In this document: one piece after another, positions 9,501-62,170 of the stretch
Layout: every line of letters begins with the position of its first letter
Position numbering within the stretch: position 1 is the first letter of the stretch
Assembly: GCA_950097015.1 (NCBI GenBank)
Contig: CATNEN010000001.1
Span: forward strand, 25,420,001 to 25,484,000
Direction: 5' to 3'
DNA from: Macrostomum hystrix
Taxonomy: Eukaryota; Animalia; Platyhelminthes
DNA: 64,000 nucleotides
The notes under the pieces: generated by a model
The model's database searches: none
Told to the model about the DNA's origin: nothing
Seen by the model: only the letters and a program-made list of their open reading frames with translations
Translations under genes and position numbers: made by a program

Positions 9501-12182
9501 AAAGGCGAGCGCTGGCTGATGCTGCTCAGCTTTGTCAACATCGATGCGGACTTCATCGGGGGAACTGCTGACGAAGGTGGAGCAGGTGTCGACAGCAACA
9601 CCGCCATTGTTGTCAACGGTGAGAATAGGAAGAATAAGGCGGAAAATAGCTTCTTTAATACATTTGCAGATAATATGTTTCTTAGAAAATCAGCTGAGAA
9701 AATGATTCTTAGAAATATGCATAGAAGCAGTTTCTTGAGGTTTATTAAAACCACCTGCCGAGAGGTATTATTAGAAAGGCTTATTTTATTGATTTTAAGA
9801 TTCAAGAAACTGTTTCTTGGCAAGTTAGTACAGAATGCAACTGTTACCTATAGTTTTTAAAACAACAGAGCTGTCTCACCTGGGATCTTCCAGTGCGCGA
9901 GCAGACGCTGTACCTGAAGGCTGATCGACCGCTGCGGCCGGGCGATCGACTCACCACTCGACTGACCAGCAGCGACGATGCCGACGAAGAAATTACCGCC
10001 GCCGACAATGCCGAGGCTGCTGATCCGCAGGAACTCCAGCAGGTCCGCGTAGAAGACGACGATTGCGATGATGACGAGTCCGCGTTGCGTCCTGAAGCAG
10101 CCGAGCCGCGGAAGAGAGCGGCGAGCGTCGACGCCTGCGGCTCCGACAGTCGGCTGGCCAAGACGCCGCGCCTGCAGACGGGCCGCGCCCAGCAGGCCGA
10201 AGCCGCCGTCCGCTCTCGGATCCGCAGCTGCGCCAGGTGCGGCCTGTACTTCACCTCGGCCTGGATGCTGCGCACCCACCGCCAGTTCCACGGCCTGTTC
10301 GACAGCGGCGCAGCCGCCCAGCTGCGAAGACGGCGGCGACGACCGCTGCGCGACAGTCGGCCGGAGCTGGTGCTGGCGGCTCCCGTGCTCAGTGACTGGG
10401 GCAGCATCTCCTACGTGCCAGTCAGCCCAGCGCAGTACTCGACTGAGGCTCCGCAGCGGCTGCAACTGCGGCAGCGAAGGCGGCAGCAGCAGCGCCTGGA
10501 GGAGCAACTGATGATGGAGCAGCAGGAAGCTGGCTCGGATGTTAGCGGGTGAGTATCTGTGCAAATACAATCTCTCTAATCAATGGCTTCAGTTTCTCGC
10601 ACCGCCTCTGATCTCTGAAACCCGCGATTCTGTGAAACCCAGCAGCGGCTGCTCGCCAGATCTGCCATCTGAGACCGCGGCGCTGGACCTGACCCTGCCC
10701 AGAGCGCCGTCTCCGCCGAGGAGCACCGTCAGTGCGGGACCATTGTCCAGAGCGGCCCCCAGCCTTCAGCAGCAGCAGCAGCCCAGGCAGCGCAGCCGGC
10801 CGCCAGTCGACGGCCTCGACCAGCAGAGCCGCCCGGGCCCAGAGCAGTCGCCGAGTCCGAGGAAATCTCAGCCTTCGGCCGGCCCCGTGTCCAGCCTGAT
10901 GAGTGTGTGCAAGGACTGCAAGATCGGCTTCTTCAACTACAACAACTACGTTGTGCACCGCTCTCTATACTGCCAGAGCAGCCGCTTGGCTCAGGGGGCT
11001 GGCACACCCGGCAACTCGGGCCGCACAGCCAAGCTGCCACTGCAGCAGCAGCAGCAGCCAACCATCCAGCTGCAGGAGCAAAAGCAGACTCCAATCCTAG
11101 CAGTGCCTGTTCTGCCAGCACCCAAGCTCGAGGCCCAACCCCCTGCGGCAGCCGGCAGCGCGAGTCACTCTCCCACTGGATCAGCTGAGCGCAAATTCCA
11201 GTGCCCCTACTGCCAGATCCGATTCCACTCGCCATCCACCCTCACAGCGCATCAGGCGTTCTACTGCCCGGAGAATCCAGACAAAACTGCGCCCTCCAAC
11301 ACGGCCACCAACACACTGCCATCGACTGCCGCAGCTCCAGCTGCTGCTGCTGCTGCTGCTGCAGCCTCTGCATCGACTGCCGACAGTTCGGCATCGTCAG
11401 CTGCCGCCACCGGCGACGCGGCAGGGTCCGGCTGCAGTCAGCCGTCCTGGCTGCCGATCTCTCTGGACGTCGGTGGAAGCGGAGCCGGCGGCTACAAGTG
11501 CTCCATCTGCGGCTACATCGGCCAGACTGAGCGCGGCATGAAGATGCACGCCAAGGTGCACTGCGGCTTCGGCGGCGGCAGCGGCCTCGGCACCGTGGCG
11601 GCTCCCAGCGGCGGCAGCTCCTCCTCAGCGCTGTCCCCATCGGAGACTTCAACAGGCGACGGCATCCGGCTGCCGAACGCCTTCGCCGGCGACCTGCTGT
11701 GCAGCATGAGCCCAGAGGAGCTCGGCATGCTGCAGCACAAAACACAGCCCTACAGCAAGCGGAGAACTTTTAAACGAGTGGCGCCGCCACTGGCGCAGCA
11801 GCAGCAGCAGACACTCCAGCTGCCACTGTCGCTTCACCCGGAGCTGCTCCGACATCAGCTCCAACAGCTGCATCAGCAGCACCAGCTGGCCATCTCTGCT
11901 GCCGGAGCCAGCGCCGCAGCCGCTGCTGCTGCGGCCGTTGCTGGAGCTGGCTTTCGACTGAGCCGATGCGGCAGAGACATCGAAGACGCTCAGCAGCAGC
12001 AGCAGCTGGATCAGCTGGTCTGCGTTCGCTGCGGCGAGTCATTTGAACAGCTGGAGTCCCTGCTGGAGCATCAGGAGACCGCCTGCGCCGGCCTGAGCAC
12101 CACTGCCGCGGCTGCCGTAGAAGCGGCGGCTGCGGCCGTCAAGCTGGAGGTGCGGGCAGCTGACAGCCTTGGCAGAGTTTAG
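6528..12182 (+). CDS. ZFPM: FOG/U-shaped (ZFPM)-like PR-domain CCHC/C2H2 zinc-finger protein, copy A; 5' exons not identified
   Basis: Phase-compatible exons are 6528-6676 (LPDGLEF...ASWGPF), 9450-9618 (RWLMLLSF...NTAIVVN), 9894-10548 (LYLKADRPLRPGDRL plus a C2H2 finger) and ~10643-12182. The first three rebuild a PR-like domain. The last has the FOG-type CCHC fingers CKDCKIGF..NYVVHRSLYC and CPYCQIRF..TLTAHQAFYC, a CSICGYIGQTERGMKMH finger and a CtBP-like ALDLT motif. The last acceptor is uncertain (10642 or 10645). Confidence 0.85.
6874..7256 (+). mobile_element. tRNA-derived SINE with a (TTA)n tail
   Basis: A box TGGCAGAGCGG, B-box-like GCTCGATCCC, (TTA)n tail at 7219-7256, and a 14-bp target-site duplication (TSD) TACGGCAGGTCAAA at 6860-6873 and 7257-7270. 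Confidence 0.85.
8007..8545. repeat. Homogeneous 19-bp minisatellite (GTCTGATAGACTAGGAGCT)
   Basis: About 28 essentially identical units, intronic in the FOG-like gene. Confidence 0.95.
8546..9360. repeat. 21-bp minisatellite (GTCTAACAGATTGGGAGCTGT)
   Basis: Tandem units related in sequence to the adjacent 19-mer. Confidence 0.95.
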
Positions 12183-19860: not shown

Positions 19861-21111
19861 ATATTTACATAATTTACCTACATATACATTAACATATACA
19901 TTTAGATTTACAATTTACACATCACTCAACTGATATGTATTAGGTCTCTGAAATCATTCAACTTTTCTTTCTTAAATTCTTGTGATTGTGATGATGCTTC
20001 TGTTAATGCTGTTTCTTAACTTTTGCACATGGTAGACATGTCTAGGTGCCCATTGTCTAGATTGGTCATTGCTTAGAGTAATATGATTGCTTTTCTAGTC
20101 CTAAATTCTATAACCATTTTTGCTATTGCTTAAGTTTATTTGTGTTGATTGAGTTTTAACATCCTTAAGTTAATATTATCTGGCACATTATCTTGTCCTA
20201 ACCTTGGCCATAGCAGGGGTGTAGTTATCAGGGAATACAGGGACATTGTGACGAGTGTTTAGTTAGTTGTTGTGTAGCGGATTTGGGTTGGGATTTAAAT
20301 ATATTGCTTTTTAAGTTTGTTTGTTTGACTAGCTGTGAGGTGGTAATGGGTGGGGACGGCGACGGCAACACTCAAAACATGTTTATTATTATAACAACAG
20401 AAAGTACTAATTGGGTGTTGAATAAATTTGGTGCAATAATACCCAAGTGTACACTTAGGAAATAAGCCAATCAGAATATAGGGTCAAGGTCAGAGCCAAG
20501 TTCTACTTTCTAGTCACAGAATAAAATGATTATTGCGCAAAAAGTGAATGAAGAGTGAAGTGCGAAAACCAAAATAGTGTACCATACACAATATACCGTA
20601 AACTGTATTGTTATAATAAGAAAAGTAAGAAAGTAAGTATTTACAATAATTATACACCTGCGATAAACAAACACTGCCACAATATATTCTCCCATTTGTC
20701 TGCTTAAACAGTTGCCCATTATATAAGTTAAAGTTTACTGATTTTTATCGCCGTATTTTCATGTTTCTTTGACAATATTTAGCATGTTTTACAAATGTAG
20801 AGTATGAATTAATGTACTAATGTACTAAACTAGAGTAAGTATGAATTCGCTAATAATGCAGTTATCATTTATATTTAACTATTTCCCACAGCTGCAGCAT
20901 GCGCTCCACTCTACTGCCCTGTTAGTAGCCACCAAGGAGCACGATTCGAGAGCACTCCAAGGAGAGAGCGGCAGACACTGGCCTGCCCGTTGCCATAGCA
21001 ACAATTTCAGGCATAAAAGCAGTCTCCGAGCTGCAGCGGGCCAGAGATGGAATCGCTGTGGGCTCACCTTGAGCAGTGCTCAATCTAACTCCTCACTCTA
21101 ATCCCAGTCCC

Positions 21112-24100
21112 ATGGCTGCTGGAGGCCCAAGCGATGACCAGGTGAGGGACTCAGAGAGCCAATCACAGTGCTCTTTCTATTGCTCAAATATTGACTGAAC
21201 TTTCCCACTGACTGTTGCATTGCCGACTCTCAGCTGCAGAGACTCGCCCAGCTGACCATCCAGGGCGACTTTGGCCAGGTGCGCCAACTGGCGACGCGAC
21301 AGCTGGTGGCAAGCACAGATGACAGCGGATGGACCATCTTGATGCTGGTGGCCGACGCTCCAGATACTCCCGTGGAGGCTGAGAAGTGCGTATTGTACTT
21401 ATTTGAGTTGGACGCGGATCCGGCAGCGCGTGACGGGGCCGGCGACACGGCTGCGCACGTGGCAGCCAGACGAAACCACCTGCGGCTGCTGGCGCTGCTG
21501 CCGTTCGATGCGAAGTGGCTGCAGAACAAGCGAGGCGCGACACCGCTGATGGAGGCAGCTCGGGCCGGCAGCTGGCGAATCGCGAAACACCTGCTGCATC
21601 TGCTGAGGCAGTGGAGGTATAATGAGTATAATAAGAGAGGCAACTCGAAGAGGGATCAGCTGCTCGGCCTGCAGGACAGCGAAGGTCGAACCGCGCTCGA
21701 CCTGGCGAGGCAGGGCGGCCACTCAGAGCTGGCCAGCGACATTGAGCGGTGAGTGATCAGTTCGCTGCTGTGCCCGATTCGCAGCATTGCAGCTGGGGTG
21801 GCCTGAGCATTGGTCTCAGCCCAGCCAATCAGAGCCAGTCAGCTGAAGCCGCTGTTGTTTGCATGGCCCAATGGGATTTCATTTCGGTGCAGTCGCTTTT
21901 GCATTTCTAGTTTAGCAACTCGAGCTAACTAATAAATCGATGGGAGATCACTCAAATGGGAACTTGTCAATCTGGGAAAGCATTAGAGATGCAGGGGAAT
22001 TTTGTGCTGCAACTGAATTCCCCATGTGTTTGTGTCTCCCACGGGCAGTTACACTTCCCCAATATTCTGATTGGCTGAGATTTCACTTCCCTTAACTTGG
22101 AGATTCGCAAATATGCAATCAGCAAATCTCCAATGGCTGGCATTTCTCATGCCGCAGTGCTTTCTCGACCCCAACACTTTGCTGATGCAGCGAATTTGAG
22201 GCTGAGTAAAAATGAGCTTGTCCGAAACTGCTGCCTGTTTGTGTGCGATGAGAATTTCGCATTTGATTTCTTCTGCTTTGCAGGGAGATGCGGCTGCGAG
22301 TGGATGAAAATGGCTGGATCTCCGGCCTGACAGACTCGGTGAGTGGCATCTGGGGTGCCGATGTGGGTGCAGATGAGCAGCTGTGCTCAAATTCGCCACT
22401 CGCCTTTGCAGGAGGAGGCAGAGCGAGAGGAACTGGAGCGGCTGGCCTGGGCGGGCGACTCGGCGGGGCTGCGGCGAGCGGCGACCCGCGGCAACTGCGA
22501 CCTGCCGGACAGGAGGGGTCGGACAGCGTTAATGCATGCAGCTCGGAACATCCAGTGCTCTGACGGGGCTCTGTGGCAGCATCTGCTGCAGCTCGGGGAC
22601 CCCACCTGTGCTAGTGTGGGTGCTCACAGTTGCCTGCACTGGGCAGCCGAGGCTGGCAATCCTGCCGCAGTCTCCCAGCTGCTCCATGCCGGAGCCTCCG
22701 CCAACGCCAGGGATTGGAGGGAATCCACGCCCCTCATGCGGGCAGCCTGGGCGCCCCCCGCCACCGCCGCCGCAGTCGGTCGGGCTCTGCTGGCCGCAGG
22801 GTCGGACTGGAGCCTGAAGGACAGAGATGGCAAGACTGCGCTGGACTGGGCCACAGAGTATGGAAAGAGCGAACTGGCCGAGCTGCTGCGTGGGTGAGTT
22901 GCCATGGCGACTGAGAATGTCTCTCATCTTGCATTATCGCACTGAGTGGGTGCAGGTCGCAGTGTTTCACTGATCAGAGTCAAAGTGGGTTGCAATTTTT
23001 AGCCAAAATATTTTCTGTCCAATCAGAGTTTTGCCAGCCTCTGCCACTCAAGCAGTTTGCAGTGCTGCAAATAATAGCATTAATATTATCAGTGGGAATA
23101 AGGCTTTCCATTTGCTGCTTTTTATAGGTGAAAATGCGCACTGCGTACCGTGCGGGCCGCTCTCACAAAGCCCAATTTTCAGTGCGCAATTCAGAGTTTG
23201 TGCAGTCCGAAGCAACTTCTGCTTTCGACGCTGTGGAAATTGGGGCTTGTGAAACGGCTGAGCATCGCTTCTGGAGGGGTGGGCGTGCGGGCGCTCTCCC
23301 ATTGGCTGGCGGCCTCCCCGCCCCGTCTCTCCCATTGGCTGGCTGCCTCCGCCAGTCAGTTTTAGCGTTGCGCTGTTGCGCTGTTGCGCTGCTATTGCTG
23401 GAAAACTGACACAGCTGAGCTAAAATGCACAGTTTAGTTACAGTTTGCTGCTACTTGAACTGTTAATTGGCATTGGCATTAATTACTGCAGTGCCTTCAG
23501 CAAACACAAGCAAAGGACAGGACACACTCAGGACAAACACAAGTCAGCAATCAGACGCAGACTAAAGTGCATTGAATGAAAAACAGTCTGGCTGACTGTG
23601 GCTCACTTGGCGCAAGTGACGGCCTACAGGGCGGCTGTTAAGAAGAGGCCACCCACAGAGTGGGGGTCGAGGGCCGCACAGGCAAATGAAAATGTGCGGA
23701 GAGGCCCCCAGCGAAGGCAGGGACTGTGGAGTGGGGTGGGTGGCCCCGCCTCTCTGCCCCCTCGGCACCTCGTCACCTCGCAGCCAGCGAGTGGCAATTC
23801 TGCCCATTCCGCTGACTCCTGAGCACACACGCACACAGATGCCTTCAATAAAGTTGACAGCTGTCCAAATACTTTTGCGGAGTCTGTCTCGGTTTCCTCA
23901 CCTTCTTCAGTGATTTGCCACTGGCCAAGTGAGCCTCACTGATCAAAAACTGTCAGTTGAAGAGCGGTAGAAGGGAAGTGGGATATTTTTGTATTCACTT
24001 TTCCCCACGGCATGCCAGGGCATGAATCTGACATTCTCCTTCGGTAGCATGTTTTGAGACAGGGGAGATGAGACAGGGAGATGAGACAGGGAGATGAGAC

Positions 24101-27100
24101 ATGGAGATGAGACAGGGAGATGAGACAGGGGAGATGAGACAGGGAGATCAGACAGGGAGATGAGACAGGGAGATCAGACAGGGGAGATGAGACAGGGAGA
24201 TAAGACAGGGAGATGAGACAGGGGAGATGAGACAGGGGAGATGGGACGGCGGAGATGAGACAGGGGAGATAAGACATTACAAAAAATATTACCATTGGCA
24301 TCGAAATAGAGGCTCATAGAAATAACTAATGTGAAACAGGCAGTCTGGTGTCTCGGGACTTGTTCTCAGCAGTTTTCTGAGCTTTCTCTTGAGTAAATTC
24401 CCTCATTTCTGCCTACAGGTACGAAGGCAAGAAGTACTTTGACGCGCCTACGCAGCCTCGGTGAGTTCGATTGCGGTTTCTTAGAAAATACCACAGCCTC
24501 TTCTTATGCCTTGCTTGTCTTGTCTTGCTTTTCATGGATTAATATGATTGGCTGATTGATGAAATAAGGGATGAATATGATTGGCTGATTGATGCAATAA
24601 GGGATGAATATGATTGGCTGATTGATGCAATAAGGGATGAATGTGATTGGCTGATTGATGCAATAAGGGATGAATATGATTGGCTGATTGATGCAATAAG
24701 GGATGAATATGATTGGCTGATTGATGCAATAAGGGATGAATATGATTGGCTGATTGATGCAATAAGGGATGAATGTGATTGGCTGATTGATGCAATAAGG
24801 GATGAATATGATTGGCTGATTGATGCAATAAGGGATGAAAGTGATTGGCTGATTGATGCAATAAGGGATGAATATGATTGGCTGATTGATGCAATAAGGG
24901 ATGAAAGTGATTGGCTGATTGATGCAATAAGGGATGAATATGATTTGCTGATTGATGCAATAAGGGATGAATATGATTGGCTGATTGATGCAATAAGGGA
25001 TGAATGTGATTGGCTGATTGATGCAATAAGGGATGAATATGATTGGCTGATTGATGCAATAAGGGATGAAAGTGATTGGCTGATTGATGCAATAAGGGAT
25101 GAATGTGATTGGCAGACTGGCGTAATAAGGGATGAATGTGATTGGCTGATTGACGCATTAAGGGATTGTTGTAAATGAATAGTAGCGAGTCAGCCAAGTT
25201 AGTATCCGAAACTTTCACGCCAAGTTGGCTCTCAGTTATTGGACTATATATATTCTGCGCCAATCGATATCAGAGGTGTACATGTACGAACTATGTACGT
25301 GCATTAATCAACTGCACAACATTCACCTTCCCTTTCAAAGGATAGAGCAACGAAAATAATTATGCAAATATTGAGCAGGAAATAAAAGTGCATTACCAAG
25401 CATCGAAGGAGTAAAATGATCTTTTTATGCATCAGGTACTTCAAAGAGAATTAAATCGAAACAGCTGATCGCTAATAACAGCTGAATAACCGTAACTAAA
25501 AAACGAGTCAGTGAGTCACGATTTCACCGTACCATTGCGGCGGCGCTCGCGGCCTTGAGCTCACTCGGATCGCCGTCTGGGCTGGCTGCTGCTGTCTCGC
25601 TGGGTCTGCCGCCGTCGCCGCCTCCGCGGCTGTCCCGGCTGCGCTGGGAGCCGGCGCTGGCCAGTGCGGCAGCGCTCCGGCTGGCCGCGGTACCCGGACG
25701 CAGTTGTCGACGTGCCAGCGGGAGCCATCGCTGAGGATGACGGTGGTCGCGCTCGCGATCCGGGAGATCTGCCGTGGCTCGGACAGGCGGCTGCTCAGCT
25801 TGCCGCGGGCGAACGGCCGCTTCACGCGCACCCAGTCGCCGACTATGAACGTGGGCGGCGGCCTCCGGGTCGTGTTGAGCTGATCGAAAACGCGCTGCTG
25901 CCTCCGCTTGATGCTGGCCGCCAGTCTGTGCCGCGCTGTTGTCCTTGGCTGCAGAGCTGTCAACGGGGTGCTGATCTTCCGGCCTGTCATGAGCTCCGCC
26001 GGTGACACTCCAGTCAGTGCATGCGGGGTGGCCCTGTACGACCACAGCAGCGTCTTCACCGCGTCCTTGAAGTCGTAGCCCTCCTCTAGGTGCGTCTTTA
26101 GGCCGTCCTTGAGAAAACGGTTGAAGCGCTCTACGGCCGCGTTGCCCTGGGGGTGGTAGTGCGGTGACTGCCGGTGCCGGATGCCGCAGCGCTGAAGAAA
26201 ATCCTCGAAATCGCCGGACACGAACTGCGGACCTCCGTCTGTTTTAATGCTCTTCGGCAGGCCCCAGCGGCTAAACCACGTTGTCAGGGCGTCGATGACA
26301 TCCGCGCTTGTGACAGTCGACATGCAGGCAGCCTCCGGCCACTTTGAATGCAAATCGTACAGCACCAGGATGAAGCGACAGGAGTTCGGCGCAGAGTGCA
26401 GCTCCCCGAAGATGTCGAGCTGGAGTTCCTCCCATGGACGCGTCGGCCACTTCGTAGGGGTCAGGACCGTCTTGGGTGGCTTAAAGTTCTTCTCGCTAAG
26501 CAGGCAGGCCTCGCAATGTCGCACAAATTCCTCGATATGCTGATCGATTTGCGGCCACCAGACTGCGTCCCGGCAATGCTGCTTCATTTTGCTCACGCCG
26601 AGGTGCCCGAAATGCGCCAGCTGCAGCGTCTTCTCCCTCAGGGATGCGGGGATTACTGCTCGGGTGCCGTTGGCCAGGCACTTGCCGTCATTCCAGAGCG
26701 CCAGTTGCGTCCGCATCCTCCAGAACGGCTGCAGCTCCGGCTTCAGCTGCTTGATGGAGTTAGGCCACCCCTGGAGCGTCATTGTGACCGCATCATTGAT
26801 CACCGGGTCCTGCAGGGATGCCTCGGCCAGTTCGCTTGGACTGACAATCTCCAGCGCGCCCGATAGCAGTACGGCATTCACTTGGAGCTCGGTCGAGTCC
26901 TCTTCGCTTTGCCTTGGGCATTTTCCTTCGAGAGCGCCGTGGCGCGACAAAAAATCTGGCACGATGTTCTTCTTGCCAGGAACGTGGCAGACTTGGAAGT
27001 CGTACGCGAGCAGGCGGTCGGCCCATCGATGAAGCCGCAGAGGCCGGTGGCCGCTGCCTTGAGCCGTCAGCAGCGTCGTCAGAGCCTGGTGGTCCGTGTG

Positions 27101-30100
27101 CAGCTCGAATCTCCGGCCGAACAGGAAATAGTGCCATCTCTCGCACGCGAAGATGCACGCGAGAGCCTCTCTCTCTGATGCGGAGTACTTGCGCTCGGTC
27201 GCTGACAGGGTCCTTGACGCGAAAGCGACTGGTCTTCGAACCCCGGCGCTGTCGTCTTGCATCAGCACGGCCCCCAGAGCGTGCGCGGAGCTGTCGCAGG
27301 CCACGATGATCTTGTCGTCGGGACTGAAGAATCGCAAGCATGTTGGGGACACCACCATCTTCTTGAGCCTCCAAAAGGCCTTTTGGCAATCTGTTGTCCA
27401 GTTCCAGGGCTGCTCTTTGCGAAGTAGCAGCAGCAGCGGCTCGGCGATGTCGGACAGGTTGTGCAGAAAGTTGGAATAGAATTTAACCATTCCCAGAAAT
27501 GAGGCCACTGCCTCGGCGTTCTGGGGCTCCGGCACCGCCTCGATGTCTTCAACGTTAGACTGCATCGGCTGAAGTCCTCTCGCGGAGACGATGTAGCCCA
27601 GGAACTGCACTGTCTCTGCAGCCCACTGGCACTTTGAGGCGTTGAGCGTGACGCCATGGGCGAGCAGCTTGTCCAGCACTGTCGTGAGCCGCCGCAGGTG
27701 CTCCGCCTCGTTGGCAGCGTGCACCACTATGTCGTCGATGTAGTGCAGCGTCCCGGAACAGCCATGGAGAATCTTGCTGAGAACTTTCTGGAAGGCCGCC
27801 GGGGCGCTGTTTAGGCCATAGCATACGCGCTTGTACCGGTACAGCCCTTTCTCCGTAATGAAGGCCGTTAAGTCCCGCCTATCTTCTGCTAGCTCCAACT
27901 GCAGATACGAAGAATTTAAATCCAGCTTAGTGAACACGGTCGAGCCCTTGAACTCCGTTGTCAGCTCCTCGAATGTCGGCAGCGGCTGCTTATCCGGAAC
28001 TATGGCCTTGTTTGGGCACCTGAGGTCATTGCAGACCCTGATTTTGCCATCAGGCTTCGGGACGATCACCAGGTTCGAAATCCACTCTGAAGCCTGGATC
28101 TCCTCGATGATGTCATCCTCCAGCAGCTGGTCAATCTCCGCCTGGACTTTGTCTTTGATGCTAAGTGGGATGCGGCGTAGCGATTGCGCCACCGGGGGCA
28201 CGGCGGGGTTCAGCCTGGGCCGGTGCTCGAATCCTCGGATCCGCCCGAGTCCCTGTGTCAGTGGCTTGAAGCGCTCGGCCAGCCAGACCGGTAGCTCTGC
28301 CGTTTTTTCGACTGTGCGCACGAGGTCGCCGTCCTTGTCCACCACCTGGAAGCTGAGGTGCTGCATCAGATCCGTTCCCATGATGTCGGAGCCTTGCCGT
28401 ACCACGGTAAAGCAGAAAAATGGCACCAGCTGGCCGCGATAGCTGACGGACAGCACCGCCTCGCCGACGACATCGATTGCCTTGCCGTTGTACGCGATGA
28501 GTTTCTTGGTCGACGGCTGGAGTGGCGACCGGTTTCCGAGCTTCCTGAAGGTCCTCTCTGACAGGATGGACACCTTGGCTCCCGAGTCTACAAGCAGATT
28601 CAGCCAGATGCCATGCACCTTCAGCCGGCAGCGGATGTCGGGACTGGAGGCGCCGCGCACCATGTACACGGCTTGGCCGCTCTCGTCCATGACCTCGGCG
28701 ACCTTGGCGCCCTGCGACCTGCACATCCGGCCGAAATGGTTCGCCTTCCCGCAGACATGACAACTCTTGCCTTCAGCTGGACACCGGGCTCGTCTGTTGT
28801 GCCCGCCTCCGCACTTGGAGCATGACTCTCGATCTGGTCGCCCTTGTCCTGTGTTCTTCCTGTCTGGTTGTAGTCGGACTCTCTTCACCTCTTCTTCCAG
28901 CTGTGCTCCGGCCGCGGCTGCGCCTTCCGTCTCTATCGCGCTGGCCTCAGCGATGCTGGTCTCCCATTGCTGGCTCAGCGTCACTGCCTTCTGCAGCGTC
29001 AGGCCGTCCTCGATCAGCAAGCGCTCTCGAATTCGCCTGTCGCTGACCTTCTCCACGATCTGGTCGCGGATCATTTCTTCCATCATGTCGCGGAACTCAC
29101 ATGAGCCAGCCAGAGCATACAGAGCCGCCACGAAGTCCGCAATCTTTTCACCCGGACGCTGACTGCGCTGCCGAAACTTGTGGCGCTCCGCCACCACGTT
29201 GACTTTGGCTCCGAACTGCTCGTCCAGAATCGCGACTGTCGCCGCGAGTTCTGTCGGACTCGGCCTCTTCGTTGCTGCCACAGCCGCAAAGACTCGCTGC
29301 CCTTCCGCGCCAAAGCAGTGCAGCAACAGCGCGCGCCTCCTCGCTTCCGGCAAAGTGTCGTAGCCGGCCGCAAGTAAGTAGTTCTCAAAGAGGGCCTTCC
29401 ACTCTTTCCACGGCCTCGCCGGTCGGCCCGGCTGCGGCAGGAATTGATCCGGCGGCGATACGCTGATCCGCGGCGCTTCTGCTGAGTTGCTGTCACTCGT
29501 CATGTTTCAGTTTGTACTTTTGCAGTTTGGCGCTGTTGTTTACGCTTGGCTTGGCAGGCTTGCAGTCACTTCACTTCAGTCTACTCCGACCCCGGCTTAT
29601 TGGGGTGGGTGTTCGCTTGAGCTTGCGATGCCAATGTTGTAAATGAATAGTAGCGATATGATTGGCTGATTGACGCAATAAGGGATGAATGTGATTGGCT
29701 GATTGATGCAATAAGGGATGAATATGATTGGCTGATTGATGCAATAAGGGATGAAAGTGATTGGCTGATTGATGCAATAAGGGATGAATGTGATTGGCAG
29801 ACTGGCGTAATAAGGGATGAATGTGATTGGCTGATTAACGCAATAAGGGATGAATGTGATTGGTTGATTGATGCAATAAGGGATGGATATCATTAGCTGA
29901 TTGATGCAATAAGGGATGAATGTGATTGGCAGACTGGCGTAATAAGGGATGAATGTGATTGGCTGATTGACGCATTAAGGGATGAATATGATTGGCTGAT
30001 TGACGCAATAAGGGATGAATGTGATTGGCTGATTGATGCAATAAGGGATGAATATGATTGGCTGGTTGATGCAATAAGGGATGAATATGATTGGCTGGTT

Positions 30101-33100
30101 GATGCAATAAGGGATGAATGTGATTGGCTGATTGATGCAATAAGGGATGAATATGATTGGCTGATTGATGCAATAAGGGATGAATGTGATTGGCTGATTG
30201 ATGCAATAAGGGATGAATATGATTGGCTGATTGATGCAATAAGGGATGAAAGTGATTGGCTGATTGATGCAATAAGGGATGAATGTGATTGGCAGACTGG
30301 CGTAATAAGGGATGAATGTGATTGGCTGATTGACGCATTAAGGGATGAATATGATTGGCTGATTGACGCAATAAGGGATGAATGTGATTGGCTGATTGAT
30401 GCAATAAGGGATGAATATGATTGGCTGATTGATGCAATAAGGGATGAAAGTGATTGGCTGATTGATGCAATAAGGGATGAATGTGATTGGCAGACTGGCG
30501 TAATAAGGGATGAATGTGATTGGCTGATTAACGCAATAAGGGATGAATGTGATTGGTTGATTGATGCAATAAGGGATGGATATCATTAGCTGATTGATGC
30601 AATAAGGGATGAATGTGATTGGCAGACTGGCGTAATAAGGGATGAATGTGATTGGCTGATTGACGCATTAAGGGATGAATATGATTGGCTGATTGACGCA
30701 ATAAGGGATGAATGTGATTGGCTGATTGATGCAATAAGGGATGAATATGATTGGCTGGTTGATGCAATAAGGGATGAATATGATTGGCTGGTTGATGCAA
30801 TAAGGGATGAATGTGATTGGCTGATTGATGCAATAAGGGATGAATATCATTAGCTGATTGATGCAATAAGGGATGAATGTGATAAGCTTATTGATGCAAT
30901 AAGGGATGAATGTGATTGGTGTTGTGACGTAGCGAACTTTAATATCGGTGCTGTGGGCCGAGTGCTAGTATTGCTTAATGGTGATTGCGCAATGTACATG
31001 CCAATGACACCTCTTTAATGTACATGCATTGGTTGAGTAAATATATAAAGCATTGCACGCCCGTTTTGGAGGGCTGGAGCTTTTAAGTGGAATTGACACT
31101 GGCTGACTTCTCTCGCTCACTACATTTGGCGTCGCAAGCAGGATCGTCCGATGCGGCTTGAAGCTCTTCTCGCTCATGACGCACGCAGAACAATTGGCTG
31201 ATTGATGCAATAAGGGATGAATGTGATAAGCTTATTGATGCAATAAGGGAAGAATGTGATTGGCTGATTGAAGCAATAAGTGCATGTCTCATTGTATCAT
31301 TTTGGCTTGAGTGTCTATGATAAAAACATATCAAAATCACACAATATTAGTGATGAACGGCTATTCGTGCACGAATGATTTGACCTCGGTGCAAATGCAT
31401 TCGTGCACTCATAGCAGTTCATTACTTATACATTGTAACCTCCCTCAGTGTTTAAGGTGAGTTCGTTTGTATATTCTTAGAAACATTAATAGTCCGGAAA
31501 ATCTCTGTCACTCTAGTAACTGCTCATTTACCTGCTCAATCGAGGTGCTTAGTTTTATAATATATTTTTAGTTTAATCAAAATTGAACGCAATAAATCTA
31601 AATAGATAATAAAGCGAAGTGCAGCAATAGACAAATGCAATGAAGTTAACTATTCTGAATTTCTATCAGTCTTTATGAGTATCTGCTTTGTACCCGCATT
31701 GCAGCACTGTTCGAGTGGACCACATCGATGAGCTTTCGAGCGACGATGAGCGTTCGACGCCACCAGGGTGAGTCACAGGACTTGAGCACTCTGCTCTTTT
31801 GGCTTGTTCTGCGCATTCTTTGATTGCCTCTTAAATAACAGCTTTGAAATTTGCAACAGCCCGCAGTACCCATCGTATCGTCCTCCTGAAAGCCCCCGGC
31901 ACGCTGTTGAGCCCATATGGTGTGCACTTTTACATTCTGGAAGGGCGGCACGTGGTTTGGCTTTAGTTTAATGATGATAATCGTAGTCAGTGATGGCATT
32001 GGGTGTCAGTGATGGGATTGGGTGTAAGTGATGGCATTGGGTGTCAGTGATGGCATTGGGTGTCAGTGATGTGATTGGGTGTCAGTGATGGGATTGGGTG
32101 TCAGTGATGGGATTGGGTGTAAGTGGTGGGATTGGGTGTCAGTGATGTGATTGGGTGTCAGTGATGTGATTGGGTGTCAGTGATGTGATTGGGTGTCAGT
32201 GATGGGATTGGGTGTCAGTGATGGCATTGGATGTCAGTGGTGGGATTGGGTGTCAGTGATGTGATTGGGTGTCAGTGATGTGATTGGGTGTCAGTGATGT
32301 GATTGGGTGTCAGTGATGGCATTGGGTGTCAGTGATGGCATTGGATGTCAGTGGTGGGATTGGGTGTCAGTGATGGCATTGGATGTCAGTGGTGGGATTG
32401 GGTGTCAGTGATGGCATTGGGTGTCAGTGATGGCATTGGGTGTCAGTGATGGCATTGGATGTCAGTGGTGGGATTGGGTGTCAGTGATGGCATTGGATGA
32501 CAGTGATGGCATTGGATGTCAGTGGTGGGATTGGGTGTCAGTGATGGCATTGGATGACAGTGATGGCATTGGATGTCAGTGGTGGGATTGGGTGTCAGTG
32601 ATGGCATTGGATGGCAGTGATGGCATTGGATGTCAGTGGTGGGATTGGGTGTCAGTGATGGCATTGGATGACAGTGATGGCATTGGATGTCAGTGGTGGG
32701 ATTGGGTGTCAGTGATGGCATTGGGTGTCAGTGATGGCATTGGGTGTCAGTGATGGCATTGGGTGTCAGTGATGGCATTGGATGTCAGTGGTGGGATTGG
32801 GTGTCAGTGATGGCATTGGGTGTCAGTGATGGGATTGGGTGTCAGTGATGGGATTGGGTGTCAGTGATGTGATTGGGTGTCAGTGATGTGATTGGGTGTC
32901 AGTGATGGGATTGGGTGTCAGTGATGTGATTGGGATTCAGTGATGGGATTGGGTGTCAGTGATGAGATTGGGTGTCAGTGATGAGATTGGGTGTCAGTGA
33001 TGAGATTGGGTGTCAGTGATGTGATTGGGTGTCAGTGATGGGATTGGGTGTCAGTGATGGGATTGGGTGTCAGTGATGTGATTGGGATTCAGTGATGGGA

Positions 33101-34083
33101 TTGGGTGTCAGTGATCTGATTGGGTGTCAGTGATGGGATTAAGCCGCTAAGATTTCTTGCCTTGTCTGAAACCGGTTGCCGCATTCCAGGACTCAGGATG
33201 ACTATTACCGGGTGACTGACCCACAAGGCTTCTGCCTCATCATCAACATCAAGAACTACAATTCTGACAGCGCCATCACGGTCAACCTTGAAGTTCGCGA
33301 GGGCGCGCAGCACGACGTGGAGCGAGTGAGGCAGGTGTTCCAGGAGCTGCGCTTTGTGGTTGACTATCAGGAGGACCTCACCGCTGAGCAGATTGACGAC
33401 TATCTCAATGAAAAGAAGAAGTCAAAGGAGCTGGCCGGCCACGGCAGCTTCGTCTGCTTCCTGATGGCCCACGGCAGCCACGACTGCATCTATGGCATCG
33501 ACTGGCGCCCGTTTGAAATCCAGAAGCTGACGGAAAAGTTCGAGGTAAGTGGACAATGGCACTCAGTAATGAACACTTTCAAGAGCTGAACACACTCTGC
33601 TGCAATACGCCTCCACCCAAGGCCTCAATCTGCCGGAGTCTGGCTGGCAAGCCGAAGATCTTCTTCATCCAGGCCTGCCGAGGTCCCCGCGTTGACACAG
33701 TGGCGCCACGAAACACCGACCTGAGGACCGACGACGCCCCGGTGCTAAACCCGACACTTCACCCGGCTAAGGCGGACTTTCTAGTCTGCTTTGCCAACAC
33801 TCCGGGCAAATTTGCCTTCAGAGATGTCAGATGGGGCTCCATCTTCGTACAGACTCTGTGCGACTTCATTACGAAGGACTTCAGCGTGCATGACCTGGTG
33901 CACATCATGGTCAGAGTGAACCGACACATTCAGAATAATCCGATCCGCATTGATAACAAGGTGTACCATGTGGTGCCACAGATGGTTGCCCAGCTGTCCT
34001 ATAAGATCTGCCTCGACCCCAGCAGGGCCCTCAACCCACAGAGGCCAAGCACCGATGGTTCCCGCGTGTGCGAACTGCTCTAG
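21112..34083 (+). CDS. Ankyrin-repeat-caspase fusion protein, copy A (~687 aa predicted)
   Basis: Predicted exons are 21112-21141, 21234-21748 (ANK), 22284-22338, 22412-22893 (ANK), 24419-24460, 31705-31767, 31860-31919 (weak donor), 33190-33544 and 33622-34083. All introns are GT-AG and phases match, giving a 2064-nt open frame. The ANK exons end at GTGAGT donors, with no in-exon stop. The caspase exon has a phase-2 acceptor and no ATG of its own. Confidence 0.72.
21234..21748 (+). CDS. Ankyrin-repeat exon 1, copy A
   Basis: Ankyrin motifs GWTILM, GDTAAHVAA, GATPLMEAARAG and GRTALDLARQGG. Confidence 0.9.
22412..22893 (+). CDS. Ankyrin-repeat exon 2, copy A
   Basis: Ankyrin motifs GRTALMHAA, SCLHWAAEAGN, STPLMRAA and GKTALDWATEYG. 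Confidence 0.9.
23570..23842 (-). mobile_element. 5'-truncated SINE-like repeat sharing a core with the SINE at 6874
   Basis: 23790-23840 is the near-exact reverse complement of 7109-7158; the paralog is at ~55115-55385. Confidence 0.55.
24055..24275. repeat. 14/15-bp purine-rich minisatellite (GAGATGAGACAGGG[G])
   Basis: Tandem units. Confidence 0.9.
25167..29656 (-). mobile_element. Ty3/Gypsy LTR retrotransposon with a truncated 5' LTR
   Basis: The 3' LTR at 25167-25321 (155 bp, TGTTGT...ACAACA) is preceded by the polypurine tract GAAAGGGAAGGTGAA. Only 22 bp of the 5' LTR remain (29635-29656), followed by the primer-binding site TGGCATCGC. The element is absent from copy B. Confidence 0.92.
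25508..29503 (-). CDS. Gag-Pol polyprotein (1331 aa)
   Basis: Single ORF with a gag CCHC knuckle (CHVCGKANHFGRMC), protease LVDSGA, RT YIDD, RNase H (ACDSS...YSASEREAL) and integrase (HHCC, TDGGPQF, VERFN). Domain order is PR-RT-RH-IN. Confidence 0.96.
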   Translation of the reverse strand: MTSDSNSAEAPRISVSPPDQFLPQPGRPARPWKEWKALFENYLLAAGYDTLPEARRRALLLHCFGAEGQRVFAAVAATKRPSPTELAATVAILDEQFGAKVNVVAERHKFRQRSQRPGEKIADFVAALYALAGSCEFRDMMEEMIRDQIVEKVSDRRIRERLLIEDGLTLQKAVTLSQQWETSIAEASAIETEGAAAAGAQLEEEVKRVRLQPDRKNTGQGRPDRESCSKCGGGHNRRARCPAEGKSCHVCGKANHFGRMCRSQGAKVAEVMDESGQAVYMVRGASSPDIRCRLKVHGIWLNLLVDSGAKVSILSERTFRKLGNRSPLQPSTKKLIAYNGKAIDVVGEAVLSVSYRGQLVPFFCFTVVRQGSDIMGTDLMQHLSFQVVDKDGDLVRTVEKTAELPVWLAERFKPLTQGLGRIRGFEHRPRLNPAVPPVAQSLRRIPLSIKDKVQAEIDQLLEDDIIEEIQASEWISNLVIVPKPDGKIRVCNDLRCPNKAIVPDKQPLPTFEELTTEFKGSTVFTKLDLNSSYLQLELAEDRRDLTAFITEKGLYRYKRVCYGLNSAPAAFQKVLSKILHGCSGTLHYIDDIVVHAANEAEHLRRLTTVLDKLLAHGVTLNASKCQWAAETVQFLGYIVSARGLQPMQSNVEDIEAVPEPQNAEAVASFLGMVKFYSNFLHNLSDIAEPLLLLLRKEQPWNWTTDCQKAFWRLKKMVVSPTCLRFFSPDDKIIVACDSSAHALGAVLMQDDSAGVRRPVAFASRTLSATERKYSASEREALACIFACERWHYFLFGRRFELHTDHQALTTLLTAQGSGHRPLRLHRWADRLLAYDFQVCHVPGKKNIVPDFLSRHGALEGKCPRQSEEDSTELQVNAVLLSGALEIVSPSELAEASLQDPVINDAVTMTLQGWPNSIKQLKPELQPFWRMRTQLALWNDGKCLANGTRAVIPASLREKTLQLAHFGHLGVSKMKQHCRDAVWWPQIDQHIEEFVRHCEACLLSEKNFKPPKTVLTPTKWPTRPWEELQLDIFGELHSAPNSCRFILVLYDLHSKWPEAACMSTVTSADVIDALTTWFSRWGLPKSIKTDGGPQFVSGDFEDFLQRCGIRHRQSPHYHPQGNAAVERFNRFLKDGLKTHLEEGYDFKDAVKTLLWSYRATPHALTGVSPAELMTGRKISTPLTALQPRTTARHRLAASIKRRQQRVFDQLNTTRRPPPTFIVGDWVRVKRPFARGKLSSRLSEPRQISRIASATTVILSDGSRWHVDNCVRVPRPAGALPHWPAPAPSAAGTAAEAATAADPARQQQPAQTAIRVSSRPRAPPQWYGEIVTH
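31986..33140. repeat. 19-bp minisatellite (GTGTCAGTGATGGSATTGG)
   Basis: Tandem units in the intron before the caspase exon; copy A only. Confidence 0.95.
33190..34083 (+). CDS. Caspase (peptidase C14A) p20+p10 exons, copy A
   Basis: Motifs GFCLIIN, R-EGAQHD, FVCFLMAHG (catalytic His), KPKIFFIQACRG (catalytic Cys), ADFLVCF and AFR...GSIFVQTLC. Intron at 33545-33621. Confidence 0.95.
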
Positions 34084-34187
34084 CTTTGCTCAAACTGCAC
34101 TTTTTATGGACTTTGGTTGATGATTTTCTGCAGTATTCTGCAAGTTCAGTATTGTCAACCCGTTGACAATGCGACTGGTGGGACTAT

Positions 34188-34852
34188 TGTCTATTGTCTA
34201 CAGATTGGTATCTGTTGTCTACAGATTGGTGTCTATTGTCTAAAGATTGGTGTCTATTGTCTAAAGATTGGTGTCTATTGTCTACAGATTGGTGTCTATT
34301 GTCTAAAGATTGGTGTCTATTGTCTATAGATTTGTATCTATTGTCTACAGATTGGTGTCTATTGTCTAAAGATCGGTGTCTGTTTTCTAAGGATTGGTGT
34401 CTATTGTCTACAGATTGGTGTCTATTGTCTAAAGATTGGTGTCTATTGTCTATAGATTTGTATCTATTGTCTACAGATTGGTGTCTATTGTCTAAAGATC
34501 GGTGTCTGTTTTCTAAGGATTGGTGTCTATTGTCTAAGGATTGGTGTCTATTGTCTACAGATTGGTGTCTATTGTCTAAAGATTGGTGTCTGTTTTCTAA
34601 GGATTGGTGTCTATTGTCTAAGGATTGGTGTCTATTGTCTAAGGATTGGTGTCTATTGTCTACAGATTGGTGTCTATTGTCTAAAAATTGGTGTCTATTG
34701 TCTACAGATTGGTGTCTATTGTCTAAAAATTGGTGTCTATTGTCTACAGATTGGTGTCTATTGTCTAAAAATTGGTGTCTATTGTCTACAGATTGGTGTC
34801 TATTGTCTACAGATTGGTGTCTATTGTCTACAGATTGGTGTCTATTGTCTAC
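34188..34852. repeat. 21-bp minisatellite (GTCTATTGTCTACAGATTGGT)
   Basis: Tandem units. Confidence 0.95.
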
Positions 34853-36384: not shown

Positions 36385-36921
36385 CGATTTGGGGAATGGG
36401 GATCGATGGGGGAATGGGATCGAGTAGGGGGAATGGGGATCGAGTTAAGGGAATGAGAATCGAGTTGAGTGAATGGGGATCGATTTTAGGGAATGGGGAT
36501 CGATTTGGGGGAATGGGGATTGAGTTGAAGGGAATGGGGATCAAGTTGAGGGAATGGGGATCGAGTTGGGGAATGGGGATCGAGTTGGGGAATGGGGATC
36601 GAGTTGGGGGAATGGGGATCGAGTTGGGGGAATGTGGATCGAGTTGGGGGAATGTGGATCGAGTTGAGGGAATGCGGATCGAGTTGGGGGAATGGGGATC
36701 GAGTTGGGGAATGGGGATCGAGTTGGGGGAATGGGGATCGAGTTGAGGGAATGGGGATCGAGTTGGGGGAATGGGGATCGAGTTGGGGGAATGTGGATCG
36801 AGTTGAGGGAATGGGGATCGAGTTGAGGGAATGGGGATCGAGTTGAGGGAATGGGGATCGAGTGGAGGGAATGGGGGGTCGAGTGGAGGTAATGGGAATC
36901 GAGTTAAAGGAATGGGGATCC
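36385..36921. repeat. 20-bp G-rich minisatellite (GGGAATGGGGATCGAGTTGR)
   Basis: Tandem units. Confidence 0.95.
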
Positions 36922-37821
36922 AATAGAGTGGATTAGGGATACAGTAGTTGAGAGCATTACTAGCTTGTATGAGCCAATTTCAAATTCGAGTCCAGTTTGT
37001 TAAACTTGAGTTGCATTTTCAACCCACCTTGAACTGAAAGTGCGGCAGCCACCGAACCGCAGCTGCATGAAATCCGGTTTCAACCGGTTCAGTCGCTGTC
37101 TATGGCGCATTTGTTCAGCGCCTTTCTGCAGTTTTGTAAAAGTTCGCGGAGTTGGGGTGGGTGTCTTTCGAGTCGCTTTCTCAAGCCCGCCCTCCCGAGT
37201 TCTCAAAGTGCTGAGCACTGACGGCCCCCAGCCGCTCATCTCAAAATAAGTTTTGTTGATTTTATCTTTTGTTTCAATTCAACTGCTGCATTGTGCTTGA
37301 CTGCTCAATTATCTTCTGCTCAGCTTTAGTCCCTATGTCTGCCCAGAGCTGCTCACTTGAGTTCACTTTTTTCTCTGCCTAGCCGACTCATTTTATTGAA
37401 ATTCCATTTGAAGCAGCTCAGATTTTGGCCCTGCTCACCCTGAGCAGTGCTCACTGTTGTCTCCAGTTTGCACTGCAGGGCAGCTGGCTGAGGGAGGGCC
37501 GATGGACTCAGAATAAGGACCTCTAAAAATAGCACCTGCACTCTGTGAGCAGATTCGAAAACCCGATGAGATGCTCAGAATTCAAGTTGAATGGAATCGG
37601 CCATGGCAGAGAGAATTTTAGCAGCACAAATGCCTGATTCTGCAGCCTGGGCTCGAACCCACAGCCTGCGGAGTCCCAGCCGATTCTCCCAACTGCCGTC
37701 ACTCTGCAGGACATTTATAATTATGATTTATGATTCCAGCTGGCTCACCATGGGAGCGGGCAGAGGACATTGCAGCAGGAGGCGCCCACGACTGCAAGAG
37801 ACAGAAGAGCGAGAGAATGAA

Positions 37822-41870: not shown

Positions 41871-44167
41871 TGCGCGAGCAGACGCTGTACCTGAAGGCTG
41901 ATCGACCGCTGCGGCCGGGCGATCGACTCACCACTCGACTGACCAGCAGCGACGATGCCGACGAAGAAATGACCGCCGCCGACAATGCCGAGGCTGCTGA
42001 TCCGCAGGAACTCCAGCAGGTCCGCGTAGAAGACGACGATTGCGATGATGACGAGTCCGCGGTGCGTCCTGAAGCAGCCGAGCCGCAGAAGAGAGCGGCG
42101 AGCGTCGACCCCTGCGGCTCCGACAGTCGGCTGGCCAAGACGCCGCGCCTGCAGACGGGCCGCGCCCAGAAGACCGAAGCCGCCGTCCGCTCTCGGATCC
42201 GCAGCTGCGCCAGGTGCGGCCTGTACTTCACCTCGGCCTGGATGCTGCGCACCCACCGCCAGTTCCACGGCCTGTTCGACAGCGGCGCAACCGCCCAGCT
42301 GCGGAGACGGCGGCGACGACCGCTGCGCGACAGTCGGCCGGAGCTGGTGCTGGCGGCTCCCGTGCTCAGTGACTGGGGCAGCATCTCCTACGTGCCAGTC
42401 AGCCCAGCGCAGTACTCGACTGAGGCTCCGCAGCGGCTGCAGCTGCGGCAGCGAAGGCTGCAGCAGCCGCAGCTGGAGGAGCAACCGATGATGGAGCAGC
42501 AGGAAGCTGGCTCGGATGTTAGCGGGTGAGTATCTGTGCAAATACAATCTCTCTAATCAGTGGCTTCAGTTTCTCGCACCGCCTCTGATCTCTGAAACCC
42601 GCGATTCTGTGAAACCCAGCAGCGGCTGCTCGCCAGATCTGCCATCTGAGACCGCGGCGCTGGACCTGACCCTGCCCAGAGCGCCGTCTCCGCCGAGGAG
42701 CACCGTCAGTGCGGGACCATTGTCCAGAGCGGCCCCCAGCCTTCAGCAGCAGCAGCAGCCCAGGCAGCGCAGCCAGCCGCCAGTCGACGGCCTCGACCAG
42801 CAGAGCCGCCCGGGCCCAGAGCAGTCGCCGAGTCCGAGAGGAAATCTCAGCCTTCGGCCGGCCCCGTGTCCAGCCTGATGAGTGTGTGCAAGGACTGCAA
42901 GATCGGCTTCTTCAACTACAACAACTACGTTGTGCACCGCTCTCTATACTGCCAGAGCAGCCGCTTGGCTCAGGGGGCTGGCACACCCGGCAACTCGGGC
43001 CGCACAGCCAAGCTGCCACTGCAGCAGCAGCAGCAGCCAGCCATCCAGCTGCAGGAGCAAAAGCAGACTCCAATCCTAGCAGTTCCTGTTCTGCCAACAC
43101 CCAAGCTCGAGGCCCAACCCCCTGCGGTAGCCGGCAGCGCGAGTCACTCTCCCACTGGATCAGCTGAGCGCAAATTCCAGTGCCCCTACTGCCAGATCCG
43201 ATTCCACTCGCCATCCACCCTCACAGCGCATCAGGCGTTCTACTGCCCGGAGAATCCAGACAAAACTGCGCCCTCCAACACGGCCACCAACACACTGCCA
43301 TCGACTGCCGCAGCTCCAGCTGCTGCTGCTGCTGCTGCTGCTGCCTCTGCATCGACTGCCGACAGTTCGGCATCAGCCACGTCAGCTGCCGCCACCGGCG
43401 ACGCGGCAGGGTCCGGCTGCAGTCAGCCGTCCTGGCTGCCGATCTCTCTGGACGTCGGTGGAAGCGGAGCCGGCGGCTACAAGTGCTCCATCTGCGGCTA
43501 CATCGGCCAGACTGAGCGCGGCATGAAGATGCACGCCAAGGTGCACTGCGGCTTCGGCGGCGGCAGCGGCCTCGGCACCGTGGCGGCTCCCAGCGGCGGC
43601 AGCTCCTCCTCAGCGCTGTCCCCATCGGAGACTTCAACAGGCGACGGCATCCGGCTGCCGAACGCCTTCGCCGGCGACCTGCTGTGCAGCATGAGCCCAG
43701 AGGAGCTCGGCATGCTGCAGCACAAAACACAGCCCTACAGCAAGCGGAGAACTTTTAAACGAGTGGCGTCGCCACTGGCGCAGCAGCAGCAGCAGACACT
43801 CCAGCTGCCACTGTCGCTTCACCCGGAGCTGCTCCGACATCAGCTCCAACAGCTGCATCAGCAGCACCAGCTGGCCATCTCTGCTGCCGGAGCCAGCGCC
43901 GCAGCCGCTGCTGCTGCGGCCGTTGCTGGAGCTGGCTTTCGACTGAGCCATTGCGGCAGAGACAGCGAAGATGCTCAGCAGCAGCAGCAGCTGGATCAGC
44001 TGGTCTGTGTTCGCTGCGGCGAGTCATTTGAACAGCTGGAGTCCCTGCTGGAGCATCAGGAGACCGCCTGCGCCGGCCTGAGCACCACTGCCGCGGCTGC
44101 CGTAGAAGCGGCGGCTGCGGCCGTCAAGCTGGAGGTGCGGGCAGCTGACAGCCTTGGCAGAGTTTAG
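41871..44167 (+). pseudogene. ZFPM: FOG/ZFPM-like copy B, 5'-truncated and frameshifted
   Basis: Lacks equivalents of exons 6528-6676 and 9450-9618. A 2-bp insertion at ~42838 (CCGAGAGGAAA versus CCGAGGAAA) splits the last exon into ORFs 42516-42878 and 42866-44167. Confidence 0.75.
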
Positions 44168-62070: not shown

Positions 62071-62170
62071 ATAGAGTGGATAGGAATACAGTATTGAAAG
62101 TAGTTGAGAGCATTACTAGCTTGTATGAGCCTATTTCAAATTCGAGTCCAGTTTGTTAAACTTGAGTTGA

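Follow-up and report, generated by a model that had tools for sequence, protein, structure and literature searches.

Caspases with an ankyrin-repeat prodomain, termed ANK caspases, have been described as a monophyletic platyhelminth group that is sister to the DED caspases and restricted to parasitic species (PMC11463336; Genome Biol Evol, 2024), a paper that cites Schistosoma as the place of their first notice (Lee et al., 2014, Trends Parasitol). For Macrostomum lignano, the same paper gives only a caspase with a kinase-like prodomain, placed as the sister of the clade of ANK caspases. Here, a 64-kb stretch of DNA from the flatworm Macrostomum hystrix (contig CATNEN010000001.1, or C1, positions 25420001-25484000; the whole stretch is called the window and is numbered from its first letter) was found to contain two tandem genes, A and B, lying in a segmental duplication with an offset of ~31.5 kb. 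Both genes most likely encode flatworm ANK caspases, an architecture that is already published. The claim of novelty in the original prediction, which supposed this architecture to be uncharacterized in animals and named a prior description as grounds for giving the idea up, fails here because the architecture is described in PMC11463336 and is present in public M. lignano annotations, where models combining Ank and Peptidase_C14 exist in number. No parasite ANK caspase sequences were found among the returned database matches.

As in the described platyhelminth ANK caspases, which are proposed to be initiators, the modeled ankyrin prodomain of A and B lies N-terminal to a p20/p10 caspase, and neither CARD nor DED is present. 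The described group is stated to be confined to parasites (PMC11463336), whereas A and B belong to a free-living flatworm; moreover, unlike in the published ANK caspases, the ankyrin module of A and B is hypervariable and is common to kinase genes. The CARD/DED initiator caspases (caspase-2, -8, -9, and Dredd) resemble A and B in having a long interaction domain at the N-terminus, an intersubunit linker that can be cleaved, and specificity for Asp, but their prodomain is a death fold and not an ankyrin solenoid. We know of no separate sensor or adaptor for ANK caspases. Two M. lignano proteins, P0164 (BOX15_Mlig016858g2, 731 amino acids, Ank and Peptidase_C14) and P0009 (BOX15_Mlig009377g1, PAA46841.1, 760 amino acids), annotated only as hypothetical or ANK_REP_REGION, are 60-69% identical to A and B in the first ankyrin block (ANK1) and 54-61% identical in the p20 part of the caspase; both small linker exons are aligned, but the linker that follows the micro-exon is longer (~42 residues). 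A further set of relatives, the ANK-kinase genes (for example, loci L005, L006, and L009 of the same genome and M. lignano P0170-P0178), has the same module of ANK1, small exon, second ankyrin block (ANK2), and linker micro-exon, with 85-96% amino acid identity in ANK1 and the same hypervariable positions in ANK2. The effector of these genes is a single protein-kinase exon of ~950 nt, whereas that of A and B consists of two caspase exons.

We read A and B as tandem genes for ANK caspases that would be triggered by a ligand, and we give this explanation, mechanism included, a probability of about two in three. Partial RNA evidence and strong comparative evidence make it very probable that the single-chain ANK-ANK-linker-caspase architecture is real, and there is a good likelihood that the ankyrin and caspase parts are fused in one gene. 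The pair probably represents functional ANK-caspase genes.

Both copies have two ankyrin-repeat open reading frames (ORFs) on the forward strand, followed further 3′ by two Peptidase_C14 ORFs, with 10.3 kb between the ankyrin and caspase parts of A and 5.6 kb between those of B. For copy A, Pfam assigns Ank_2/Ank to the ORFs at 21279-21752 and 22343-22897 and Peptidase_C14 to those at 33176-33589 and 33556-34083; the same four ORFs were found in copy B. The closest public proteins to the genes of the window are all M. lignano models (40-72% identity), a search for proteins or fragments from the same species found none, and another protein search yielded M. lignano only. A genome-wide search for Peptidase_C14 (220 Mb) yielded 81 caspase-domain matches, copies A and B included.

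Gene models were checked and searched exon by exon and not as a joined protein. RNA contigs from four runs (X1-X4) were placed on positions 20900-24054 at a likeness of at least 90%; X4 represents the same species (50 contigs at a likeness of at least 99%), and X1-X3 represent a relative. The depth profile and the spliced joints indicate that all four runs hold RNA. Copy A is modeled with 8 exons on the forward strand (2004 nt, 667 amino acids, no internal stop). Its exon 1 (21112-21141) carries the start codon and encodes MAAGGPSDDQ; an in-frame stop lies upstream at 21070, and the joint 21141>21234 is present in RNA contigs of X1, X2, and X4. The first ankyrin exon (ANK1, 21234-21748), with a cap and four repeats matched by Pfam Ank_2/Ank, has RNA joints on both sides and is 60-72% identical to the ankyrin modules of M. 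lignano. Between the ankyrin blocks lies a 55-nt exon (22284-22338, R|EMRLRVDENGWISGLTDS), which is bounded by the RNA joints 21748>22284 and 22338>22412 and aligns collinearly with M. lignano P0009, P0164, and P0170. The second ankyrin exon (ANK2, 22412-22893), recognized by Pfam and likewise composed of a cap and four repeats, is hypervariable at its contact positions; its acceptor is set by RNA, and its donor at 22893 is predicted. The introns 21142-21233, 21749-22283, and 22339-22411 are thereby confirmed by RNA contigs. In the intron after ANK2, 48 nt (23793-23840) show a very high RNA depth (7313 in X4); the loose ends differ on both sides in all four runs, which points to a short sequence common to many transcripts.

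The 3′ exons of copy A begin with a 42-nt micro-exon (24419-24460, G|YEGKKYFDAPTQP; CTACAG acceptor, GTGAGT donor, phase 2 in and out), a predicted linker that ends the ankyrin module and has conserved counterparts in the M. lignano proteins P0164 (YEGKVYFNEPLALP) and P0009 as well as in the ANK-kinase P0170. It is followed by a 63-nt candidate cassette exon (31705-31767, R|TVRVDHIDELSSDDERSTPP; TTGCAG acceptor, GTGAGT donor, open frame, phase 2 in and out), the coding status of which is uncertain because the 442-bp segment carrying it recurs in at least six copies within the intron of an ANK-kinase gene; its likeness to P0164 is weak. Caspase exon 1 (33190-33544) encodes p20 with an S1 Arg and the catalytic His in MAHG, and caspase exon 2 (33622-34083) encodes QACRG, the linker Asp sites, p10, and the stop; both are matched by Pfam Peptidase_C14 and by alignment to caspase-3 structures in the PDB. 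The acceptor of the latter was chosen by homology: placing it at 33622 gives KLTEKFE|ASICRSLAGKPK, with the spacing found in copy B, M. lignano P0017, and caspase-3, and the last intron of A thus most likely ends at 33621. Along the chain 22893>24419>31705>33190, the donors are GTGAGT and the acceptors are CTACAG, TTGCAG, and TTCCAG; in both copies, the phases fit and no stop intervenes.

Copy B is likewise modeled with 8 exons (1986 nt, 661 amino acids, no internal stop) on the forward strand. Its ankyrin module (52617-54436) consists of exons 52617-52646, 52729-53243, 53809-53878 (70 nt), and 53952-54436, and an RNA contig of X1 contains a small exon of the B type, which is 15 nt longer than the A version. 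The 42-nt micro-exon of B (56147-56188) has one synonymous change relative to A and the same splice sites, the 63-nt candidate cassette exon (58682-58744) ends with A instead of G, and the caspase exons (60081-60435 and 60726-61151) have ~59% amino acid identity to those of A. The ankyrin and caspase ORFs, 6-10 kb apart, had originally been proposed to be joined by phase-matched GT-AG exons. The sites, the phases, and the open frame hold in both copies, but the exon set was incomplete: exon 22284-22338 had been missed, and the second ankyrin exon starts at 22412 and not at 22343 according to the RNA contigs. The micro-exons end at 24460 and 31767, and the last acceptor is placed by homology at 33622 instead of the ORF start at 33556.

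The splice from ANK2 to the caspase is predicted from comparison with related genes. Both P0164 and P0009 align to every exon in the same order, including the RNA-confirmed small exon (EMRLRVDENGWISGLT in A vs. EMRLVVDEYGTISGLT in P0164) and the 42-nt micro-exon directly after ANK2 (YEGKKYFDAPTQP vs. YEGKVYFNEPLALP); past the micro-exon region, the M. lignano caspase part begins with DFYPVTDPQG. Within the genome, the paralog L004 (~50-60% identity) has the same ANK-ANK-caspase order in a compact form of 3 kb, and its 42-nt micro-exon of the same phase (FKDKSFFDPSIDL) lies between good splice sites. The order is also kept in the paralogs L001 (C8:4631000-4640999) and L002 (C7:161000-170999). 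These two loci have identical ankyrin and caspase exons on different contigs, which makes them a duplicate of the assembly or else the product of a very recent duplication, and are orthologous to M. lignano P0007 in both parts.

The caspase domain is complete in both copies. The two halves of copy A score 63.0 and 69.9 bits for Peptidase_C14 (cut-off 21.4), and the catalytic residues were read in both copies and, for A, aligned to caspase-3 structures. The catalytic His is found in MAHG and the catalytic Cys in QACRG in either copy. The S1 Arg of p20 lies in REGAQHD (A) or RQGSERD (B), matching RSGTDVD of caspase-3, and that of p10 in AFRD (A) or AYRD (B), matching SWRN. In sum, the His-Gly, the Cys in QACxG, the S1 Arg in p20, and the Gln and Arg in p10 that define a caspase are all present, and the intersubunit linker has Asp sites in both copies (A, LRTD/D; B, VATD/S). 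The modeled prodomain comprises ~395 residues. Among the 50 nearest database relatives of the caspase part, 13 are DED caspases. The catalytic, S1, and linker residues were thus correctly identified in the original prediction, as were the approximately eight ankyrin repeats, which form two blocks with four TPLH-type anchors and a cap each.

In contrast to the ankyrin exons, introns, and flanks, which are 92-98% identical between A and B (synonymous divergence, dS, of 0.02-0.04), the caspase exons share 59% amino acid identity, with a dS of 0.92-0.98 and a ratio of nonsynonymous to synonymous divergence (dN/dS) of 0.28-0.36. The caspase exons are under purifying selection; positive selection was considered as a source of their divergence and rejected, given a dS of ~0.95 and a dN/dS of ~0.3. 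The A and B caspases are each other's best match in the genome, and a genome search found no donor paralog for either caspase cassette. Weakly resolved caspase trees do not group A and B to the exclusion of M. lignano lineages.

Variation in the ankyrin part follows another pattern. Both blocks are well recognized by Ank_2 (E = 4e-18 and 6e-19), and the dN/dS between A and B is 0.94 in ANK1 and ~4.7 in ANK2. Designed ankyrin repeat proteins (DARPins) are randomized at repeat positions 2, 3, 5, 13, 14, and 33, which contact the target; 12 of the 21 mapped differences between A and B in ANK2 fall at these positions (binomial p = 7e-5). Across 15 modules, the entropy of ANK2 is 1.1-2.1 bits at repeat positions 1, 2, 3, 5, 10, 13, and 14 and at most 0.6 bits elsewhere; at the contact positions 2, 3, 5, 13, 14, and 33, the family-wide entropy is 1.50 bits vs. 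0.31 bits elsewhere (p = 3e-9). Framework positions of ANK2 are 80-97% identical and contact positions 14-54% identical, each member having its own signature of contact residues, rich in W, R, D, E, and Y. ANK1 is conserved across the family (0.2-0.3 bits). The variation at contact positions supports a role of ANK2 in binding member-specific ligands, and the sensor half of the proposed single-chain sensor-protease gains indirect support from this variation and from the dN/dS of ~4.7. Fungal NLR-type receptors with highly similar, hypervariable ANK, WD, or TPR repeats and DARPins also combine an invariant framework with diversity confined to target-contact positions, and there is a possible link to cell-death effectors. 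The likeness is an analogy only. A and B have no NACHT or NB-ARC domain, and their diversity is found between paralogous genes and not between the repeats of one gene.

At least 17 copies of the ANK1 exon, with 85-94% amino acid identity, lie in the region from 22.1 to 26.9 Mb of contig C1. In 12 of the 14 fetched loci, the ankyrin module is followed by a protein-kinase exon that is 60-64% identical to M. lignano ANK-kinase P0170; the kinase exons of the family are 91-98% identical to each other. Some family members (L008 and L018) show no effector over a distance of 10-20 kb. The 64-kb window has nowhere a match to the P0170 kinase part, and caspase exons occupy that place. In the ANK1 tree, all these modules form one species-specific clade (support 92/98), in which L005 and L010 are the closest neighbors of A and the kinase gene L006 is that of B (95/86), and M. 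lignano P0164 nests among M. lignano kinase modules. Since the same module is wired to a kinase in at least 12 neighboring genes, A and B can be regarded as caspase-armed members of one ankyrin-effector family. A search of the literature for a hypervariable ankyrin family in Macrostomum found nothing. One locus, L012 (C1:23926600-23936599), contains an ANK-ANK-kinase gene (331-3989) with a caspase p10-like exon on the same strand 1.7 kb downstream (5695-6114; 48% identical to A), and no p20 half was found there; L012 may be related to the M. lignano caspase with a kinase-like prodomain of the 2024 paper.

Under the proposed explanation, each gene would give one polypeptide with a short N-terminus, a conserved ankyrin block, an 18-23-residue connector, and a second block with a hypervariable concave face. 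These parts would be followed by the 14-residue linker encoded by the micro-exon, possibly by a 21-residue acidic cassette, and by a complete Asp-specific caspase consisting of p20, a cleavable linker, and p10. ANK2 may bind a protein ligand specific to each member, and ligand binding or clustering would bring the caspase domains together. Dimerization and cleavage at the Asp sites of the linker (LRTD/D in A, VATD/S in B) would then activate the protease, and a candidate site for prodomain removal is the Asp that is conserved in the linker micro-exon (YFD/A). Ligand binding and the mode of activation are inferred; against them stands that, to our knowledge, no ANK caspase has been functionally characterized.

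Other readings of the locus were weighed against this one. Each copy might hold two genes, namely an ankyrin-only gene or an ANK-kinase remnant without its kinase exon and, downstream, an independent short-prodomain caspase gene, the open frame between them being a by-product of symmetric micro-exons. Several observations point this way and weigh against a single gene. The RNA contigs lie on 20900-24054 only, none of them joins ANK2 to the micro-exons or the caspase, and the RNA support is therefore confined to the 5′ half, without the caspase exons; with at least 17 near-identical modules in the genome, contigs placed at a likeness of at least 90% may also derive in part from ANK-kinase paralogs, although several X4 pieces are ~99% like copy A. 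Read-through of the 22893 donor reaches a stop after two codons, which makes an ankyrin-only product possible, and both ANK-only models of M. lignano (P0174 and P0179) and the loci L008 and L018 would agree with such a product. Because both micro-exons are multiples of 3 nt and have the same phase, their phase match is modest evidence, weaker than that of three independent junctions; skipping either of them keeps the frame, and the 63-nt exon sits in a repeated intronic segment. In copy B, moreover, an in-frame ATG (60022) precedes the caspase acceptor by 59 nt. Translation of A, by contrast, cannot start in caspase exon 1: no in-frame ATG precedes the His, the first Met being that of MAHG, and the open frame reaches back only 14 nt beyond the acceptor. 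A start supplied by the spliced leader, which we take to end in AUG, would be out of frame in both copies as read from the sequence. Just past the 22893 donor, the RNA depth drops to zero and then resumes at the low level of the confirmed intron, so that there is no 3′ untranslated region at this place. Together with the collinearity of P0164 and P0009 with all exons, linker micro-exon included, and the same exon order in three further paralogs, these points make two genes per copy unlikely.

It would also be conceivable that one or both copies are decaying, nonfunctional duplicates, with the amino acid changes of the ankyrin part reflecting relaxed constraint and A crippled by a 4.5-kb retroelement and intronic satellite. 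The dN/dS values of ANK1 and ANK2, the retroelement and satellites that fill the introns of A, and the truncated look of other family members are compatible with decay, but both copies keep an open frame through each of the 8 exons (~2 kb) and have their splice sites and catalytic residues intact, the ANK2 changes cluster at contact positions as neutral decay does not predict, and the caspase exons show long-term purifying selection. Given also that the kinase exons are open in ANK-kinase paralogs whose introns are just as rich in satellites, decay is very improbable. A less remote alternative accepts the fusion and treats the ankyrin part as an ordinary prodomain, which would act either by docking on a fixed adaptor, in the manner of CARD and DED, or by keeping the caspase inactive until it is cleaved off. 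The conserved ANK1 could bind a common partner, an unidentified ankyrin-binding activator has been proposed (PMC11463336), and designed ankyrin proteins that can inhibit caspases are among the works cited there; a single fixed partner is nevertheless hard to reconcile with an ANK2 that is hypervariable exactly at its contact positions and bears a different signature in each member, and we regard this alternative as doubtful.

All long introns of A and B hold a satellite. In copy A, a 33-bp satellite lies in the long intron (24536-25166, continued at 29659-30919) and a 13-bp satellite in the intron after ANK2 (24055-24276); a 19-bp satellite (31986-33140) is located upstream of the caspase cassette and a 21-bp satellite (34188-34851) after the stop. 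The 33-bp satellite of A contains an open Ty3/gypsy-type gag-pol ORF of 1331 amino acids on the reverse strand (25508-29503; Pfam RVT_1, RNase H, and integrase). No flanking direct repeats resembling long terminal repeats were found around it in 25150-29680. The gag-pol ORF is absent from copy B, where the satellite is uninterrupted, and from the L007 paralog.

The introns of the ANK-kinase genes carry satellites similar to those in A and B. An ANK-kinase gene represented by L007 and L019 (C1:25573500-25593499) has an intron of ~17 kb between its linker micro-exon and its kinase exon, and in this intron the 442-bp segment with the 63-nt candidate exon occurs in at least six copies (97.7% identity) that are interleaved with the 33-bp satellite. 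In the window, the caspase cassettes (31873-34187 in A, 58850-62170 in B) have satellites on both sides: the upstream array is of 19-bp units in A and of 33-bp units in B, and the downstream array is of 21-bp units in both. The two copies differ in the side of the 21-bp array on which a 600-bp repeat lies (36416-37013 for A, 61564-62169 for B). From their sequence, A and B are mosaics of a young or homogenized ankyrin module with its flanks and of old caspase cassettes bounded by satellites. Either gene conversion of the module or an exchange of effectors through the shared intronic satellites would explain this pattern. Upstream of each ankyrin-caspase gene, GC-rich (0.66) C2H2 zinc-finger ORFs were found on the forward strand (10539-12182 and 42866-44167); these lie within the duplication and are 98% identical between the copies, the ORF of the second copy being split.

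A wider interpretation can be offered only tentatively. The ANK-ANK module might be the recognition part of a lineage-specific, immune-receptor-like family of macrostomids, with 17 or more nearly identical frameworks on a single chromosome, each having its own contact signature and each being wired to a kinase for signaling or to a caspase for proteolysis or death. The likeness of the frameworks would be kept by recent duplication or gene conversion, the satellites before the effector exon would serve as a recombination substrate for swapping effectors, and A and B would be death-wired receptors.

The two genes correct the published restriction of ANK caspases to parasitic flatworms and shift the origin of this group, or else a parallel one, to a free-living lineage that branched early. 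What is new here is that caspase-armed and kinase-armed genes share one hypervariable ankyrin module. The family thus provides a testable case of a modular sensor-effector system in an animal, and a natural experiment in which a recognition module has been rewired from signaling to proteolysis.

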